Source: Podarcis melisellensis (lineage: Eukaryota). From it: a stretch of DNA of 64,000 nucleotides. How positions within the stretch are numbered: the stretch's first letter is position 1; each line of letters begins with the position of its first letter. Below the pieces are notes generated by a model. It was not told where the DNA came from. It saw only the letters and a list, made by a program, of their open reading frames with translations, and ran no database searches. The translations under genes and the position numbers were made by a program. Of the stretch, positions 8,829 through 51,234 are shown piece by piece. The DNA lies in the NCBI GenBank assembly GCA_964234715.1, contig OZ174280.1; one strand, 5' to 3'.

Positions 8829-9629
8829 TTTTTGTTTGCCCTGGGACATTGAAAGCCGTTGTGGATTCCCCAAATTTATATGAAGCGGAACAAAAGGCAG
8901 GTGCCTGGTGCAAGGACCCTCTTCAAGCTGCGGATAAAATATACTTCATGCCGTGGACTCCATACCGTACTGATACTTTGATAGAATATGCTTCTTTAGA
9001 GGACTTTCAAAATGGACGCCAGCAGACGACATACAAGCTTCCAAACCGAGTGGATGGTACTGGATTTGTGGTATATGATGGTGCTGTCTTTTTTAACAAG
9101 GAAAGAACTAGGAACATTGTAAAGTTCGATTTGAGGACTAGAATTAAGAGTGGAGAGGCAATTATAAATTATGCCAACTACCACGACACTTCCCCTTACA
9201 GGTGGGGAGGGAAGACTGACATTGATTTGGCAGTTGACGAAAATGGCTTGTGGGTCATTTATGCCACGGAACAAAACAATGGGATGATAGTTATTAGCCA
9301 ACTGAATCCTTATACCTTGCGTTTCGAGGCAACGTGGGAAACTACGTATGACAAACGGGCAGCATCTAACGCCTTTATGATATGCGGGGTTCTCTACGTT
9401 GTGCGGTCCGTATACCAAGACAATGAAAGTGAAACTGGCAAGAACTCAATTGATTACATTTACAACACTCGGTTATTCAGAGGAGAATATGTAGATATCC
9501 CTTTCCCCAACATGTACCATTATATTGCTGCTGTGGATTACAATCCAAGAGACAATCAACTGTATGTGTGGAACAACAACTTCATCCTGCGATATTCTCT
9601 AGAGTTTGGTCCCCCTGACCCCGCTCAAG
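8829..9629 (+). CDS. ADGRL2: ADGRL2 olfactomedin-domain exon (801 nt; (I/V)FVCPGTLK...EFGPPDPAQ)
   Basis: ctgctag|TTTTTGTTTGC acceptor and CAAG|gtaagc donor. Corresponds to ORF 8849..9661, which is nearly identical to the latrophilin-2 OLF domain as I recall it. Confidence 0.97.
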
Positions 9630-10474
9630 GTAAGCATTCTTTATTATCTCTATTTCTTTAAATACTAAGTTATTTTAATAGAAGGCTTGCTAATGAAACT
9701 AGCCTTCAGTATTTTGGCAATTAAAGTACCTGTTTTGTAATGAAATGAAACACAAAAATGGATTTAAAATTGTACCTGTGCCATCTTGTTCCATAGCAAC
9801 ACACCCAATGGTAAGATTCAGCTCCACATTATTAGGCTCAAGACAATCTATCCATTTGGAATAAGAAGCATGTTAGCATTGGTGTTTTTATCTGATTTTA
9901 GTCCTGAGTACAATATTTTTAAAAACTTTAAAACTATTTTCTGCCTGTGGCTGGGAAAGATGTGGTTTGAAGAACCTGATGCAGTTAGGTGCAGTAGTTC
10001 TCAGCGTCGATGCTGCAAAGGTTTGTATTTTCCAAGTCTGCAGTTTGAGCCTGAAAAGAGGATTAGCCTCTATCTTTGTAACATGCTATAACATCCCATA
10101 ATTTCCCATTGGTGGAGCAAATGCAAGTCAGTGTATTCAATTTGAGAATAGCTATGGCTACTTAAAAGACTGCATCGTTATGTAAGCTGCCAACGAGTAG
10201 TCATTTGGGAACTTGTATCACTGAGGAAATGTCTCCAGTATGCAGAACCGCGGGTGCACATACAAATGTTAAATGCAGAGGATGTAGCTTTTGAAGACTG
10301 TTTTGGCAGTGGAATTAGGAAAAGATCCACACGCACACCCTTGTAAGCTCACTAAAAACAATTTGCATTCCCGGAATGTTATTTTAGTTGTAGTCTCCAA
10401 CAAAGCTGCTTTTAGTTACCTATTTTTTCACATGTTATTACTGGATATCTCTCTTCAGCTGTTACAAACTTTTA

Positions 10475-45600: not shown

Positions 45601-47900
45601 ACAATATATGTATTCTGCTCTTGTGCCTGGGATTTCATGCATGGCTCATATTGCGAGCTAGGACTAGGCATGCAGAAAAGTCTCCTTCTCCACACACTTC
45701 ACCCTCACTCAATAGGTCCACAGTTCTCACACCCTTTGAGAGGAATCATTAATCACAAGAAAATTACAAGATCATTTTATAGTGTTGTGACAGCAGAAAT
45801 ATTTCCGTGAGTCAGTTTGAATCAATTCCTTGAAGGAATCAATTCAGTGGCTTTCAAGGCGCACACAATATTAATGTTCTTTAAGAAATTAAGCATTTAA
45901 ACTGTCATATATATATCACCCAATCACACCTTACAAATATTTGTGATTTCTTAGATAGCAATGAGAAGAATCAGGAGAGTGAAGAATAAGCAAAACATTT
46001 TCTTCATAAAAATTCCGAGTACAAGTCATTTCTTGTGAGTGTATGCTCTTCAACAAGTTCCTCTGCTCTGCCCCTTTCTGCTTTCCATGTTACATGATAT
46101 TATGGCAATCTGTCCGAGTTTGTTTAACCCTTGATTAGAGGTGATTTATCTAGAGGAGAGGCATTTTCCCAGAGCTCTCACCTACCATGGTGATGTTCTT
46201 ACCAGGTGCGTGTGTTTAATAGCAAGAAAGCGAATACTTTTCTAATGGGTACTTGGAGCATAGGCAAACCAGGACTTCTGAATGTTGCTTTCACAGAGCG
46301 AACTAGTGTGCTTTGGTTTGCTTGATACTTTAAATTGTATCATATTTCACAGAGATGTGGTGAACAAGTATCTCATGCTCTGTTGTCATATGTCTTAGTT
46401 ACTTTGCTTTAGAACTACAGTATGTTGTATTCTTAAAGAGACTTTCATTTTCACTTACCATCATATTACAGGACCTTTATCAGCTGAATCAAAGTGCAGT
46501 GTTTCTTGTTCTGCCACCCTTTCTCTTTCTTTCACTTTCTATGCTTAAGCAGACACTCAATTTTTTATTTTTATATCAATCAATAAGTTTTATTGTTTAT
46601 AGCCAATGGCCATCACAATACAATATGAGCACAAATCACACAGCTACAAAAAACACTGTATGCTCCAGACCAGGAAAAATCCACCATGTCCAAAATTTAG
46701 GAACATTCCTTCTACTCAGCACCCCCCACCACAAAGGATTCTTTTGGCACTTTCAAATCTGATTAGCCGTCTACTGGCATGAGTAGCATGATGATATCAC
46801 TGACCCCAGTTATGGATAGTGTTTGCTGTCTTGGGGGGTGGAGGAAGAGATGTTTGCTGTAGGGAGGTAGGAGGGCTTGCTTCATAAACCACATTGGTTT
46901 CCACAGCGGATACCCACAGGGATCTGGCTGATGTTATAGCATCTATGGCAATCCTCAACTCCTGCCAGTGAGGAATCCAGTTGGAAGTAGCATATGGCTT
47001 AAAGGCCCAATTAGGGCCACTATTCCAGCACTAAACATGAGTAAAGAAGTCATGATCCTGAACACTCTAGTAGCAAAGTAGAAAGCAAAGCTATGCCAGC
47101 AGAAACAAGAGATATTAGCATAGCAGCATGGACAACCACATCCACAGTATCCATGGAAATCTTGCACCAACACTGGTCACAGCCAGGCAATTTATAGTGA
47201 CTTCAGGGGTGCTGTGATGCTATCACAGAAACCGTTCCACCCCCACCCCCAGTGCACGAGCATGCTTGCTGGAAGAGATATTTGTGTCTCAGAAGCATCT
47301 GTGACTCACTGGTTAGGAGGACAGCAGCTGATCCCTGCAGCCACAGTGGCATCAGCAGGATTTTGGATTACAAGGCAGCCAAAATACAGAATCAGAAGCA
47401 GCCTGAAATCATAACACCTTTTGCCAGAACCAAACAGTGTCCACTCCAGTTAAAGCAGGCAGCCAGTTTGTATAACCCAGAGTGTAGAAGGCTTGGGTAT
47501 AGAAACTACAGGACGATGGCCTCACTGTTCCTTCCTCTGATAGAATGCTTAGTTAATATAACAATGCACATAAAAGATGTGCGTTACTGTCTGTGTAAGG
47601 GTGCAGCCATTTTGCAAGGGAGAAAAGATAGCCAATTCTGCTAGGAAGAATACACAGCAAAACAGCAAGGACAAAAAAAGAAAGCATTGTGAGCTGCCTG
47701 GTTGCTATAGAGTACAAAATAAATGCATTATTTACACTATGGCTTTACAGGGAAGTGGAAAGGGCAGTCTTTGAGTCATTGCTAATTCCTGCAGTTGCAA
47801 CAGGGGATCAAACTGGCTTCAGTTTAACTCCCAGTATTGGTTGTAGTTTATTGTCAAGTAGTTCATATGTAAACAAGGTCATTAACATGCCGAAATTATT

Positions 47901-48230
47901 GGACTTCCGGGATAGCGCGATCCGGTAATGGCGGATTCCCTCCGAGCTCCGGAGGGAATCGGCTCCGCAGAGGACGGGTCTTGCCGTGCCGGCGACACGG
48001 GGACCCTCAAAAACCGCAGGCGCTGAAGCCTGCGGACTTGGTGACTCGGTGGGCACCTTAAACGCCCTCCCCGACCCGCGAAGAGCCTTTTTAAAGGCTG
48101 CGGAGTGGACTGGGGTGCGGCGCGGTGCTGAGAGTCCATCGCTACCTCGGCGGAGCGAAGCCGCGAGCCATGGCTGGAGAGCGCTGTCTTCCTTCCTGAA
48201 ATTTGGACTGAAACAAAGAACCCGTGAGTA
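47901..48230 (+). promoter_or_regulatory. CpG-rich 5' region of the retroposon; putative internal Pol II promoter
   Basis: The densest CpG cluster in an otherwise CpG-depleted window. ETS-like ACTTCCGG at the very 5' end. Position is analogous to L1 5'UTR promoters. Confidence 0.55.
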
Positions 48231-48709
48231 AAATGAAAATTCGACACTAAAATTTTACCTTTGATTGGAGTACGACCGGGGGATGTGCTAAAAGGAAGTC
48301 CACACTCCCCCCCCCCACAAAAAGATTCAAGCAAGGAGAGGAGCACTAAGGTGGAAAGACTTTTGTGTTTAGAAAAACAACTTGCACGAAATGGATTAAA
48401 AGTTATTGTGCTGGAGAGGAAAGAGGAATATTAGAAGCTTTTGTGTAATCCCCCCCCCATTCTGGACCCGGGAGTGTCCTGCGTGTGAGCCTGAGGAAAA
48501 AAAGAGAAAGTTTGACAGCTGTCAAAAGAGCTGTTAAACGGACGATTAGAGGCTGGAACTGTGATATTTAGAAATTTCTCTTTGGATTAAAGGTGACATA
48601 TTGTATCTGAACTGATTGGAAACAAAGTATTTTGAACAACAAAGTAACGAATTGCTGGAAAAGAACTATTAGACTGGCAATCCCCCTGGAGGGAACAAAG
48701 GATACTGCA

Positions 48710-49384
48710 ATGGCTGCAGAAGGAAAATTATGGGCAGAGATAGAAAGGATGTTTTTTCTCGTGGGAACTTTACAAGAGCAGACTGCAGATATGAGCAAAC
48801 AACTTGTGACCTTGAATCTGAAATTGAGCAACTCTGCTGACAATACAAAGTTGGAAAAAAACCTGGCAGCCGGAAAAGAAGAGACAGCTTTGGAAATGGG
48901 GGGAAAAGAAGAAGAAGAAGAAGGAGAGGATGTTCAGATGGAAAGCACCAACCAAAAGTCTGCAGCTTTAGGAAACAAAGGAACTGAAGAAGAGGACCAG
49001 TGGACCGTAAATCTGCAAAAGGAGAGAAGGACAAAGGAAGAAGCCCCTGGAATATCTGGAATACTGAAATACAAAAAAACAAATAAACATGATTGGGACT
49101 TCTTCCTCAAGTTCGAATATGGGAGACTGGCAGATCCATGGCAGCAATTGCTATTGACTGATTCGGTGGAAAGAAAGAACAAGCATGATTGGGACCTTTT
49201 CTTTAAGATTGAACATGGGAGATTGGCAGATCCTTGGCAGCAATTGCTACTGACTTTGGTGGAAAGAAAGAAGATGGAACTTGGGACACAACTCCTTCGA
49301 GAACTGAAGGCCAATAAGCAACAAAACAGATGGAGAAAGACTAACTGGGGCTTGAGAGCCTCGGATGTGAGAAATCCGGGCTGA
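48710..49384 (+). CDS. Retroposon-encoded 224-aa protein of unknown function (putative N-terminal coiled coil, acidic linker, two 32-aa repeats)
   Basis: Uninterrupted ORF (track 48632..49384). First ATG at 48710 is in a good Kozak context (gcaATGG). It lies inside the TSD-bounded element, and the internal repeat shows codon-respecting divergence. Confidence 0.6.
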   Translation: MAAEGKLWAEIERMFFLVGTLQEQTADMSKQLVTLNLKLSNSADNTKLEKNLAAGKEETALEMGGKEEEEEGEDVQMESTNQKSAALGNKGTEEEDQWTVNLQKERRTKEEAPGISGILKYKKTNKHDWDFFLKFEYGRLADPWQQLLLTDSVERKNKHDWDLFFKIEHGRLADPWQQLLLTLVERKKMELGTQLLRELKANKQQNRWRKTNWGLRASDVRNPG

Positions 49385-51234
49385 GACTGTTCTTTTAGAA
49401 TAGTGATATGGGAAGGGACAGAAACCGGGCCAGGGAGGGAGGGGGAGAGTAGAATAGTAAAAATTTATGATTTTTGTTCTTTTTAATTTTGATATGGATT
49501 GTTTAATAAAAAGGGAGGATTTCGTGGGAGAGAGGGTAGGACGACCTTAGAGAAAGGAGCTAATGTGTAAAAACAGGATAAGTAAACTTGAGCCCAACAA
49601 GAGATGTTAAATATTAAGAACAGAGGATAAAAATATAATAGAGAGAAGAGGAAATAACTTGCTGAATTAACTATTGAAATTGGAATGGGGGAAGGAGAGA
49701 TGTGGGGAAGTCAAGGAAAGAGGGTAATGAACATTATATATGTTTTGTTTTGTGTTTTGTGTTTGTGTGTGTGTATGTCTATAAAATGTGAAAACTCAAT
49801 AAAAAATATTTTTTTAAAAAAAAAACATGCCGAAATTATTATTTTGCTTTGGGTGTCCCATGCTTACTATAATCAATTGTTCTTTCTCCGTGATAATAAC
49901 AGCAGCAGCATTTGAGATGAGTTTGTTAATGTGAACCAGATTAATTTCACCTTGAGTTTCTATTCTCTTGATCTATAATGGCTTATTCAAAACCTGGCTA
50001 GTTCAGAATTTCCTTGTTTTATTACACATTATTTATATCACAGGCATGTAAAGAATCCACATACAGGGCTCATTCATATGTAATGCTTAGTTCAGTGCTA
50101 TATGATTGAGTTGGAATGAACCCAAGCAAAACATCTGACCGCGTTCTCCCCTCCTTCCTTCTCCTTCTCTCACATGGCAAGGAGGAAGCCTGGTTGGTTG
50201 TTAAGTTCAAACCAGGGGATCTGGTTTAAAACAAGCTCTGCTAAGTTTCCAATGTAGCCAATTTCAGACCATGAATTGTTAAGCTGTCAAGGCCAGGCTG
50301 AACACTGGTGAGCAGGTAGGGCTGCCATACGTCTGGATTTGTGGGGTGTGGGTGAGTGGGGTGTGGGTGGGTGTCTTCCTAACTTCCTACTTTTTGAAAT
50401 ATGGCAACCCTATGAGTGGGGCCTCTCTGTTGCTGCAACTACCTCATTGGGTGCACTCCTAGGAGTAGCTGAGAAATGCAAGACCGATACACACATTTTC
50501 CTAACTTGTAGGTGTAGTTTTGACATTCCTTGCCTGACAGTGCCGTGACAGAAGAGTTTGTTTTAAAACAGGATCCCTGGCTGAAACATAAAGGCACACC
50601 AGGATTCTTCAAAATTGAAACTAGACCCTTTCAACATTGTTCTGCTGGCAGCATTGCAGGCGTGCGCAGTTGCACAAGTCCAACGCAGTGCTCATTCTGG
50701 CTCATCCACAAAGCACTAAACTTAGAGGAGAACTGCTGCCCTGAGTAGGAGACTTGGGTTCAGGACTCCCAACTTGAAGGGCCATTTCATAAACTAGGCA
50801 ATGGCTTACCTTGTCACCACCAAGTGCAGACTCAACATGGAGCAGTGGCCAGTATTCACACTTTAATTTTTTAGACGGACACATGAAGCATCTTCGGTGT
50901 ACATTTAAAAAGACATTGAAATATGTTTCCTAACGTTCTTTTGCACAGGAATGTTTAACATTAGGCAGTATGAAGCACAAATAAACTCAAACCAAAACGT
51001 CAAACCAAAATGAACAATATTACAAGATGTGCACTGAGTGAGAGTGGCTGGGCTTTGGCCATTCTTGATCTAATCTTTCTTTGCAGCCACTTTGTGCAGA
51101 CTGTTCTGTCACCAGCTCCAGAATAATTTGGAAAATAACCACTTTTTTTTACTTTTTTTGTTTAGTCTAGAGCATCATCATTACTTAACTTGTTACTTGA
51201 AGTAATTTAATTTCATTGCTATCTGTTTTGACAG

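Follow-up and report, generated by a model that had tools for sequence, protein, structure and literature searches.

The window analysed in this study is a stretch of 64,000 nucleotides from the lizard Podarcis melisellensis (GenBank assembly GCA_964234715.1, contig OZ174280.1). At positions 47901-49823 it carries a complete retroposon copy of 1,923 bp, which consists of a CpG-rich head, a leader with conserved palindromes, a single open reading frame (ORF) of 224 amino acids, a 3' untranslated region (UTR) and a polyadenylation signal with a short A-tail. The element and its parts lie on the plus strand. It is probably a full-length member of a non-autonomous poly(A) retroposon family that exists in many copies in lacertid lizards and has been active recently.

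Insertion site and boundaries

The insert begins GGACTTCCGG at position 47901. It is preceded by the 17-mer AACATGCCGAAATTATT (47884-47900), which is repeated directly behind the insert (49824-49840) with 17 of 17 positions identical; an identical pair of 17-mers has a chance expectation of about 2e-4 in 2.5 kb. Public contigs from four runs were aligned to positions 46700-51000 (at least 85% likeness). In run X1, which carries the same species label and comes from another sample and another study, a contig of 1,865 nt joins 46700-47883 directly to 49824-50420. A contig of 1,909 nt from run X6, a related species with 44 substitutions in the left flank, likewise joins 47883 to 49824. Both contigs show the empty site precisely: the 17-mer is present once, and the complete stretch 47901-49823 is missing as a block. 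The presence of a single 17-mer at the empty site proves that the flanking repeats are a target-site duplication (TSD), which otherwise would merely have been inferred. In run X2, again with the same species label, contigs span both junctions of the filled site; the flank depth of this run was 94 with zero differences, and its sample is possibly the assembled individual. Since the site is empty in X1 and filled in X2, the insertion is polymorphic within the species and must be very young. The original prediction, which was made from the letters of the window, had claimed an exact TSD of 17 bp and a sharp 5' end, and both were confirmed. It had also proposed to look for an orthologous empty site, which was found with precise ends in the same species and in a related one.

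On the top strand the target reads CATT/AACATG, i.e. TT/AACA, and 5 of the 6 positions match the L1 endonuclease consensus TT/AAAA, although a match at one site gives weak support. Together, a TSD within the range of about 7-20 bp, poly(A) after a polyadenylation signal and a TT/AAAA-like target are the features expected of L1-type target-primed retroposition.

Copy number and family status

Flank contig depth was approximately 8, 94 and 10 in X1, X2 and X6, respectively, whereas the summed contig depth over the element was 577-26,185, 9,190-85,130 and 39-42,967. Between 1,076 and 2,071 contigs were aligned per run. Over the three runs, the element was about 70-3,000 times as deep as its flanks. 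This ratio is of the order of 10^2 for the body of the element and 10^3 for the first ~240 nt, as a ratio of contig depth, which is not the same as copy number. In the three deep runs, this first part (47901-48140) was 5-10 times deeper than the body, and the head is probably common to other retroposon families, or to an L1. Loose contig ends at 47925-47927 in three runs show that other copies likewise begin (G)GGACTTCCGGG.

Logan contigs from other species that encode relatives of the ORF align from about +150 through the ORF and the 3'UTR to the AATGTGAAAAC-CAATAAAA end. In L004, L009 and L010, all from other species, AATAAA and a tail of A15-18 are followed by three unrelated flanks, which means that they derive from three independent genomic insertions. 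The element thus belongs to a multi-copy interspersed repeat family, the copies of which share both termini. The predicted recent activity of a multi-copy family agrees with the depth, with the distinct 3' flanks and with the missing insertion in a conspecific individual. Within the 64-kb window itself, BLASTN with the element retrieved only the element, its internal duplication and low-complexity matches, and no related L1 was found nearby.

At four positions (48842, 49067, 49172 and 49265) nearly all other family contigs have a G where the window copy has an A, corresponding to N45D, K120E, R155G and R186G. These are either private G-to-A changes of the window copy or subfamily markers.

Head, leader and 3' end

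The head of the element (47901-48230) has a G + C content of 63% and contains 34 CpG dinucleotides, with an observed/expected ratio of 1.04, compared to 0.27-0.45 in the rest of the element. The ~330 bp of retained CpGs in the original prediction correspond to this segment. From its base composition, from the 5' start that it has in common with other copies and from its conservation across lineages, we presume it to be an internal promoter for RNA polymerase II (Pol II). Its nucleotide identity in L013 is 73%, even though the L013 protein is only 36% identical. The sequence ACTTCCGG (47903-47910, +3) is taken to be an ETS-type site, and AATGGCGG (47927-47934, +27) presumably resembles the YY1 box that sets the start site of L1. 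We also assume that TGACAGCTGTCA is a palindromic site of TALE homeodomain factors. A search with the antisense 154-amino acid ORF of the head for other head-bearing contigs, such as those of an L1, gave no match among proteins. Searches for a small-RNA origin of the head gave no Rfam match (E up to 1) and no tRNA in the element and its flank. A short interspersed element (SINE) was rejected as a candidate on the same grounds, together with the length of 1.9 kb and the AATAAA.

Near the end of the head, about 320 nt from the start of the element, lies a conserved consensus 5' splice-site-like sequence, CCC/GTGAGTAA. Its GTGAGT is found at 48224-48229, and CCCGTGAGTAA is kept in the window copy, in L003 and in L013 (140-150 of L013). 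No spliced copies were present among the contig joints listed, apart from which there are 40 further joints. Two palindromes are found in the remainder of the 5'UTR. The first, TTTGACAGCTGTCAAA (48511-48526), is a perfect palindrome of 16 nt, which is invariant or nearly so across all lineages (3-18 in L001, 472-487 in L013 and 191-205 in L012). Here the sequence itself is conserved, without covariation, and the palindrome may serve as a protein-binding site or form an RNA hairpin. The second (48682-48693) is a GC-clamp palindrome 17 nt 5' of the AUG, which reads CCCCCTGGAGGG, CCCTCTAGAGGG or CCCCCTAGGGG depending on the lineage and which is retained even where the upstream reading frame carries an in-frame stop.

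The 3'UTR (49385-49797) is G-rich and then GT-rich, with a GC skew of +0.45 to +0.71 and a GT-rich run at approximately 49740-49772. It contains conserved blocks, including GGGGAAGTCAAGG and AATGTGAAAAC, that are common to the window copy, L001, L003, L004, L009 and L010. Across lineages, the non-coding blocks (head, GTGAGT, palindromes and 3'UTR) match the ORF in conservation. The element ends (49798-49823) with AATAAA at 49798-49803 and a run of A at 49816-49823/25. The purine-rich then GT-rich 3'UTR, the AATAAA and the A-tail of the original prediction are all present; the tail, however, amounts to only 8-10 A and follows a run of T.

The mRNA-like layout of the unit, with a 5'UTR, an ORF in good Kozak context, a 3'UTR and AATAAA, is also what would be expected of a burst of processed pseudogenes or retrogenes. 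In that case the mRNA of a host gene for a fast-evolving small protein, strongly expressed in the germ line, would have been retro-copied again and again by L1, and the selection on the ORF described below would stem from the parent gene. The 5' splice-site-like motif in the leader would fit such an origin, and so would a between-species ratio of nonsynonymous to synonymous substitutions (dN/dS) below 1, as is seen in orthologous host genes. However, a depth of 10^2-10^3 times that of the flanks and more than 1,000 contigs per run are far above known pseudogene families of single genes. Processed pseudogenes have no promoter of their own and do not form self-propagating families, whereas here each copy includes the CpG-rich head, which is conserved between lineages and takes the putative promoter along. 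Moreover, intact ORFs and poly(A) junctions are found in genomic contigs for each of several divergent lineages, and no annotated genome protein from NCBI or UniRef belongs to the family, its traced members all coming from Logan contigs. We therefore consider a host-gene origin of this kind highly improbable; the window copy is not a single-copy processed pseudogene, in line with its high depth and the distinct flanks of its relatives.

The open reading frame and its protein family

The ORF (48710-49384) starts with ATG and encodes 224 amino acids. It is the sole long sense ORF of the element and the only one with relatives, and it is free of stops as predicted. The protein consists of a coiled-coil helix (residues ~2-45), an acidic low-complexity linker, a duplicated module of 32 amino acids, a basic tail and the C-terminal peptide LRASDVRNPG. 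An upstream in-frame TTG start would extend the ORF to 250 amino acids. L001, L002 and L014 have an in-frame ATG 12 codons upstream (ME-PLEGT-DIA; compared with 48674-48709 of the window). This ATG is lacking in the window copy, and L013 has an in-frame stop in this region, showing that the position of the start codon shifts between lineages.

Pfam searches (E up to 10) with the window ORF and four divergent relatives gave nothing above noise. No reverse transcriptase or endonuclease was found with Pfam, and 1.9 kb is too short for an ORF2; the element is thus non-autonomous. A word-index protein search retrieved three relatives of 201-208 amino acids. An exhaustive HMMER profile search of 1.84 billion representatives yielded ten proteins at E<=1e-3, one of which is a low-complexity protein of 762 amino acids; the others measure 129-215 amino acids and are unannotated, and all those that were traced come from Logan contigs. 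Among these 1.84e9 proteins, the search found no L1 ORF1p, no fusion and no longer protein sharing either terminus. When a profile built from 12 family members was run against the PDB sequences as a whole, only generic helices were matched (best E 0.68), and a feature search of the ESM Atlas gave no usable match.

In the family alignment, a conserved N-terminus (MAA-GK--AEIERMF-LVG-LQ) and a conserved C-terminus (DYQQNR-RGTE-DLRASDVRNPG) enclose a variable acidic middle. The duplicated module of the window copy results from an in-frame tandem duplication of 96 nt (49074-49255), the two units of which are 83% identical. This duplication is lineage-specific and is absent in other lineages.

Selection on the open reading frame

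Codon alignments of the window ORF with those of six other lineages gave dN/dS values of 0.35-0.58 (Fisher p 1e-2 to 3e-7). For closer pairs, dN/dS was 0.16-0.31 in the N-terminal helix and 0.17-0.25 in the last 29 residues. The omega of the linker was 0.31-0.70. None of the indels among the lineages disrupts the reading frame. Between near-identical copies of different samples there were 9 synonymous vs 5 nonsynonymous changes in one comparison and 6 vs 4 in another, with synonymous sites being four times fewer. The two units of the 96-nt duplication differ at a proportion of 0.55 of the synonymous sites and 0.10 of the nonsynonymous sites (dN/dS ~0.11), which indicates that selection had maintained the protein sequence of both units in the source lineage for a long time when the present insertion took place. 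Judging by these alignments, purifying selection has preserved an open ORF even in lineages with an amino acid identity as low as 27%. In keeping with the original prediction of a family that keeps its own protein, the ORF is intact in divergent lineages, with dN/dS below 1.

Selection could also act on translation itself or on RNA signals, for instance on ribosome loading near the poly(A) or on the palindromes, in which case the ORF would be incidental and its peptide functionless. This would agree with the equal conservation of non-coding blocks and coding sequence, and with the middle of the protein being of low complexity and predicted to be disordered. On the other hand, synonymous changes accumulated 2-3 times faster than nonsynonymous changes throughout the ORF, the linker included, and indels are exclusively in frame. 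In addition, the C-terminal peptide is kept through synonymous or conservative codon changes, such as GTG to CTG and CCG to CCA in L012. On this evidence a functionless peptide seems improbable.

Predicted structure of the protein

The AlphaFold2 model, made with the family alignment, had a mean predicted local distance difference test (pLDDT) score of 52. The helix of residues 2-45 reached 84-93, and the rest of the model stayed below 60. The prediction contains no RRM or CTD. Neither these domains nor a host gene had been recognised in the ORF by the original prediction, and Pfam, the PDB profile search, HMMER and AlphaFold2 all agree on this point.

Residues 3-42 were modelled as a parallel coiled coil, in which L7, M14, L21, M28 and L35 occupy heptad position a and I11, V18, T25, L32 and L39 position d. 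When three copies of residues 1-60 were modelled together, they formed a parallel in-register bundle with the a and d residues (7, 11, 14, 18, 21, 25, 28, 32, 35 and 39) at the interface. The homo-oligomer score was 0.52, against 0.12 for the best control; the runs shared at least 76% of the contacts, and the partner pLDDT was at least 69. In a calibration on two copies and on microbial proteins, 21 of 30 solved homomers but 0 of 23 single chains reached the mark used for this score. The modelling supports self-association of the N-terminal helix.

Relationship to known elements

Non-autonomous passengers of L1 are usually non-coding, such as SINEs and SVA, or keep the ORF1p of L1, as in HAL1. 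HAL1 is a non-autonomous L1 derivative that encodes only ORF1p (PMC5753468). The mammalian HAL1 elements and the lizard element are alike in being non-autonomous and polyadenylated and in having a single first ORF and no ORF2. The lizard element probably also resembles HAL1 in being transcribed by Pol II, in depending on L1 and in being present in hundreds to thousands of copies. HAL1, however, has a recognisable ORF1p (Transposase_22, RRM and CTD), whereas the lizard ORF has neither detectable similarity to it nor a predicted RRM or CTD.

The half-L1 layout, with a 5'UTR with internal promoter, a YY1-like box near +26, a coiled-coil first ORF, a 3'UTR and poly(A), would be explained if the family were a true HAL1-type derivative. 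It would then be a lizard L1 that has lost ORF2, with the ORF representing either a shortened and diverged ORF1p or the short ORF1 of an extant autonomous L1-like lineage. HAL1 families repeatedly arose in mammals (PMC5753468, citing Bao and Jurka 2010). Against such a descent, Transposase_22 was not matched at E up to 10, and the PDB profile search found nothing below E 0.68, although the PDB includes structures of L1 ORF1p. Neither an ORF1p nor a longer protein with either terminus came up in the exhaustive profile search, and the ORF lacks a predicted RRM or CTD. Furthermore, the units assembled in other species all lack an ORF2, the stop codon being followed by the 3'UTR and then the poly(A). 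Descent of the ORF from ORF1p is therefore unlikely, while the UTRs may still descend from an L1. The view that this is not a classic HAL1 holds with respect to ORF1p, as tested by Pfam, the PDB profile search, HMMER and AlphaFold2.

As a functional analogue only, the ORF1p of L1 resembles the lizard protein in having a predicted parallel N-terminal coiled coil and basic residues near the C-terminus, and in its position as first cistron after a long 5'UTR that contains an internal promoter. L1 ORF1p has a length of approximately 340-370 amino acids. The lizard protein, in contrast, measures 224 amino acids, has no predicted RRM/CTD fold and shows no sequence homology in the searches made.

Another element with a lone protein ORF is HeT-A of Drosophila, a non-long-terminal-repeat retrotransposon that has only a Gag-like ORF and for which the reverse transcriptase is supplied in trans. 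HeT-A belongs to the Jockey clade, is telomere-specific and has a Gag with zinc knuckles, whereas the lizard element is dispersed (here it is intronic) and its protein is unrelated. SVA elements are copied from poly(A) RNA by L1 ORF2p in trans and have TSDs of 7-20 bp (PMC3287187). SVA and processed pseudogenes, both mobilised in trans by L1, share poly(A) RNA and TSDs of this length with the lizard element, which is probably mobilised likewise; unlike the lizard element, which is coding, SVA is non-coding and composite. In the literature on protein-coding non-autonomous L1 passengers of lizards or Podarcis, only HAL1 and general reviews were found; a consensus may exist in Repbase or Dfam. 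The comparisons support a recently active, protein-coding L1 passenger that is functionally HAL1-like and has a protein other than ORF1p.

Proposed mechanism

By analogy with the L1 5'UTR, we infer that transcription by Pol II starts at the fixed G47901 and is driven by the head. Since the head lies downstream of the start site, the promoter would be copied with every insertion. The resulting mRNA would have a leader of 810 nt with the conserved palindromes, one ORF of 224 amino acids, a 3'UTR and its own AATAAA. As the element encodes neither a reverse transcriptase nor an endonuclease, its RNA must be copied in trans. Poly(A) tails combined with TSDs of 7-20 bp are known as a feature of the L1 clade among the long interspersed elements of vertebrates. 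The length of the TSD, the poly(A) tail and the TT/AACA target point to target-primed reverse transcription by an L1-type ORF2p.

The protein may act as a minimal ORF1p. Oligomers would form through the parallel coiled coil. Together with the basic tail, the invariant peptide at the C-terminus would serve to bind, in cis, either the RNA of the element or the machinery that it borrows, and the resulting ribonucleoprotein particle would compete for ORF2p. We put this cis-acting, ORF1p-like role forward tentatively. A more specific proposal, which we regard as rather doubtful, is that the family represents a new class of retroposon protein that is not derived from ORF1p. Such a protein would be a minimal coiled-coil adaptor, in which the invariant LRASDVRNPG docks the messenger ribonucleoprotein particle either onto L1 ORF2p or onto a host factor associated with poly(A) or with ribosomes. 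If true, a docking adaptor would give a parasite of 1.9 kb the upper hand over L1 RNA in the competition for the reverse transcriptase, and it would be an answer to cis-preference that evolved independently.

Several observations weigh against our interpretation of the element as a recently active, multi-copy passenger with a protein of its own. A tail of 8-10 A is short for so young an insertion. The abundance was read from contig depth, and the greater depth of the head than of the body implies that part of it belongs to other elements sharing the head. Contigs of the home genome are only 120-300 nt long, too short to show the integrity of the ORF across copies, and with intact ORFs taken from a protein database the sample is an ascertained one. 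Beyond residues 1-40 the AlphaFold2 model is not confident. A partner L1 was not identified, and since none of the RNA runs contains the element, its transcription and translation are presumed.

In contrast to passengers that are non-coding or keep an L1 ORF1p, the lizard family keeps a family-specific protein under apparent purifying selection where just 27-40% of the residues remain. The polymorphic insertion indicates that the family is still jumping. It offers a natural system for asking which minimal protein features aid an RNA in capturing ORF2p in trans, how parasites of this kind persist next to the many L1 lineages present in squamates, and whether the conserved C-terminal peptide marks an interaction surface of the L1 machinery that is as yet unknown. 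The family is also a source of polymorphic insertion markers for the population genetics of wall lizards.

Genomic context

Upstream in the window, an ORF of 270 amino acids (8849-9661) is an olfactomedin-domain exon (PF02191, E 1e-82), which identifies the host gene as a latrophilin-type ADGRL on the plus strand. The retroposon lies in a downstream intron of this gene in sense orientation, and the AATAAA that it brought into the intron could trigger premature polyadenylation.

Another interspersed repeat is found at 50300-50587. In organisms A and C its contig depth exceeds that of the flanks approximately 40- to 50-fold. It has a G/T-rich core of variable length (approximately 50337-50392), and many contigs skip 47-54 nt.

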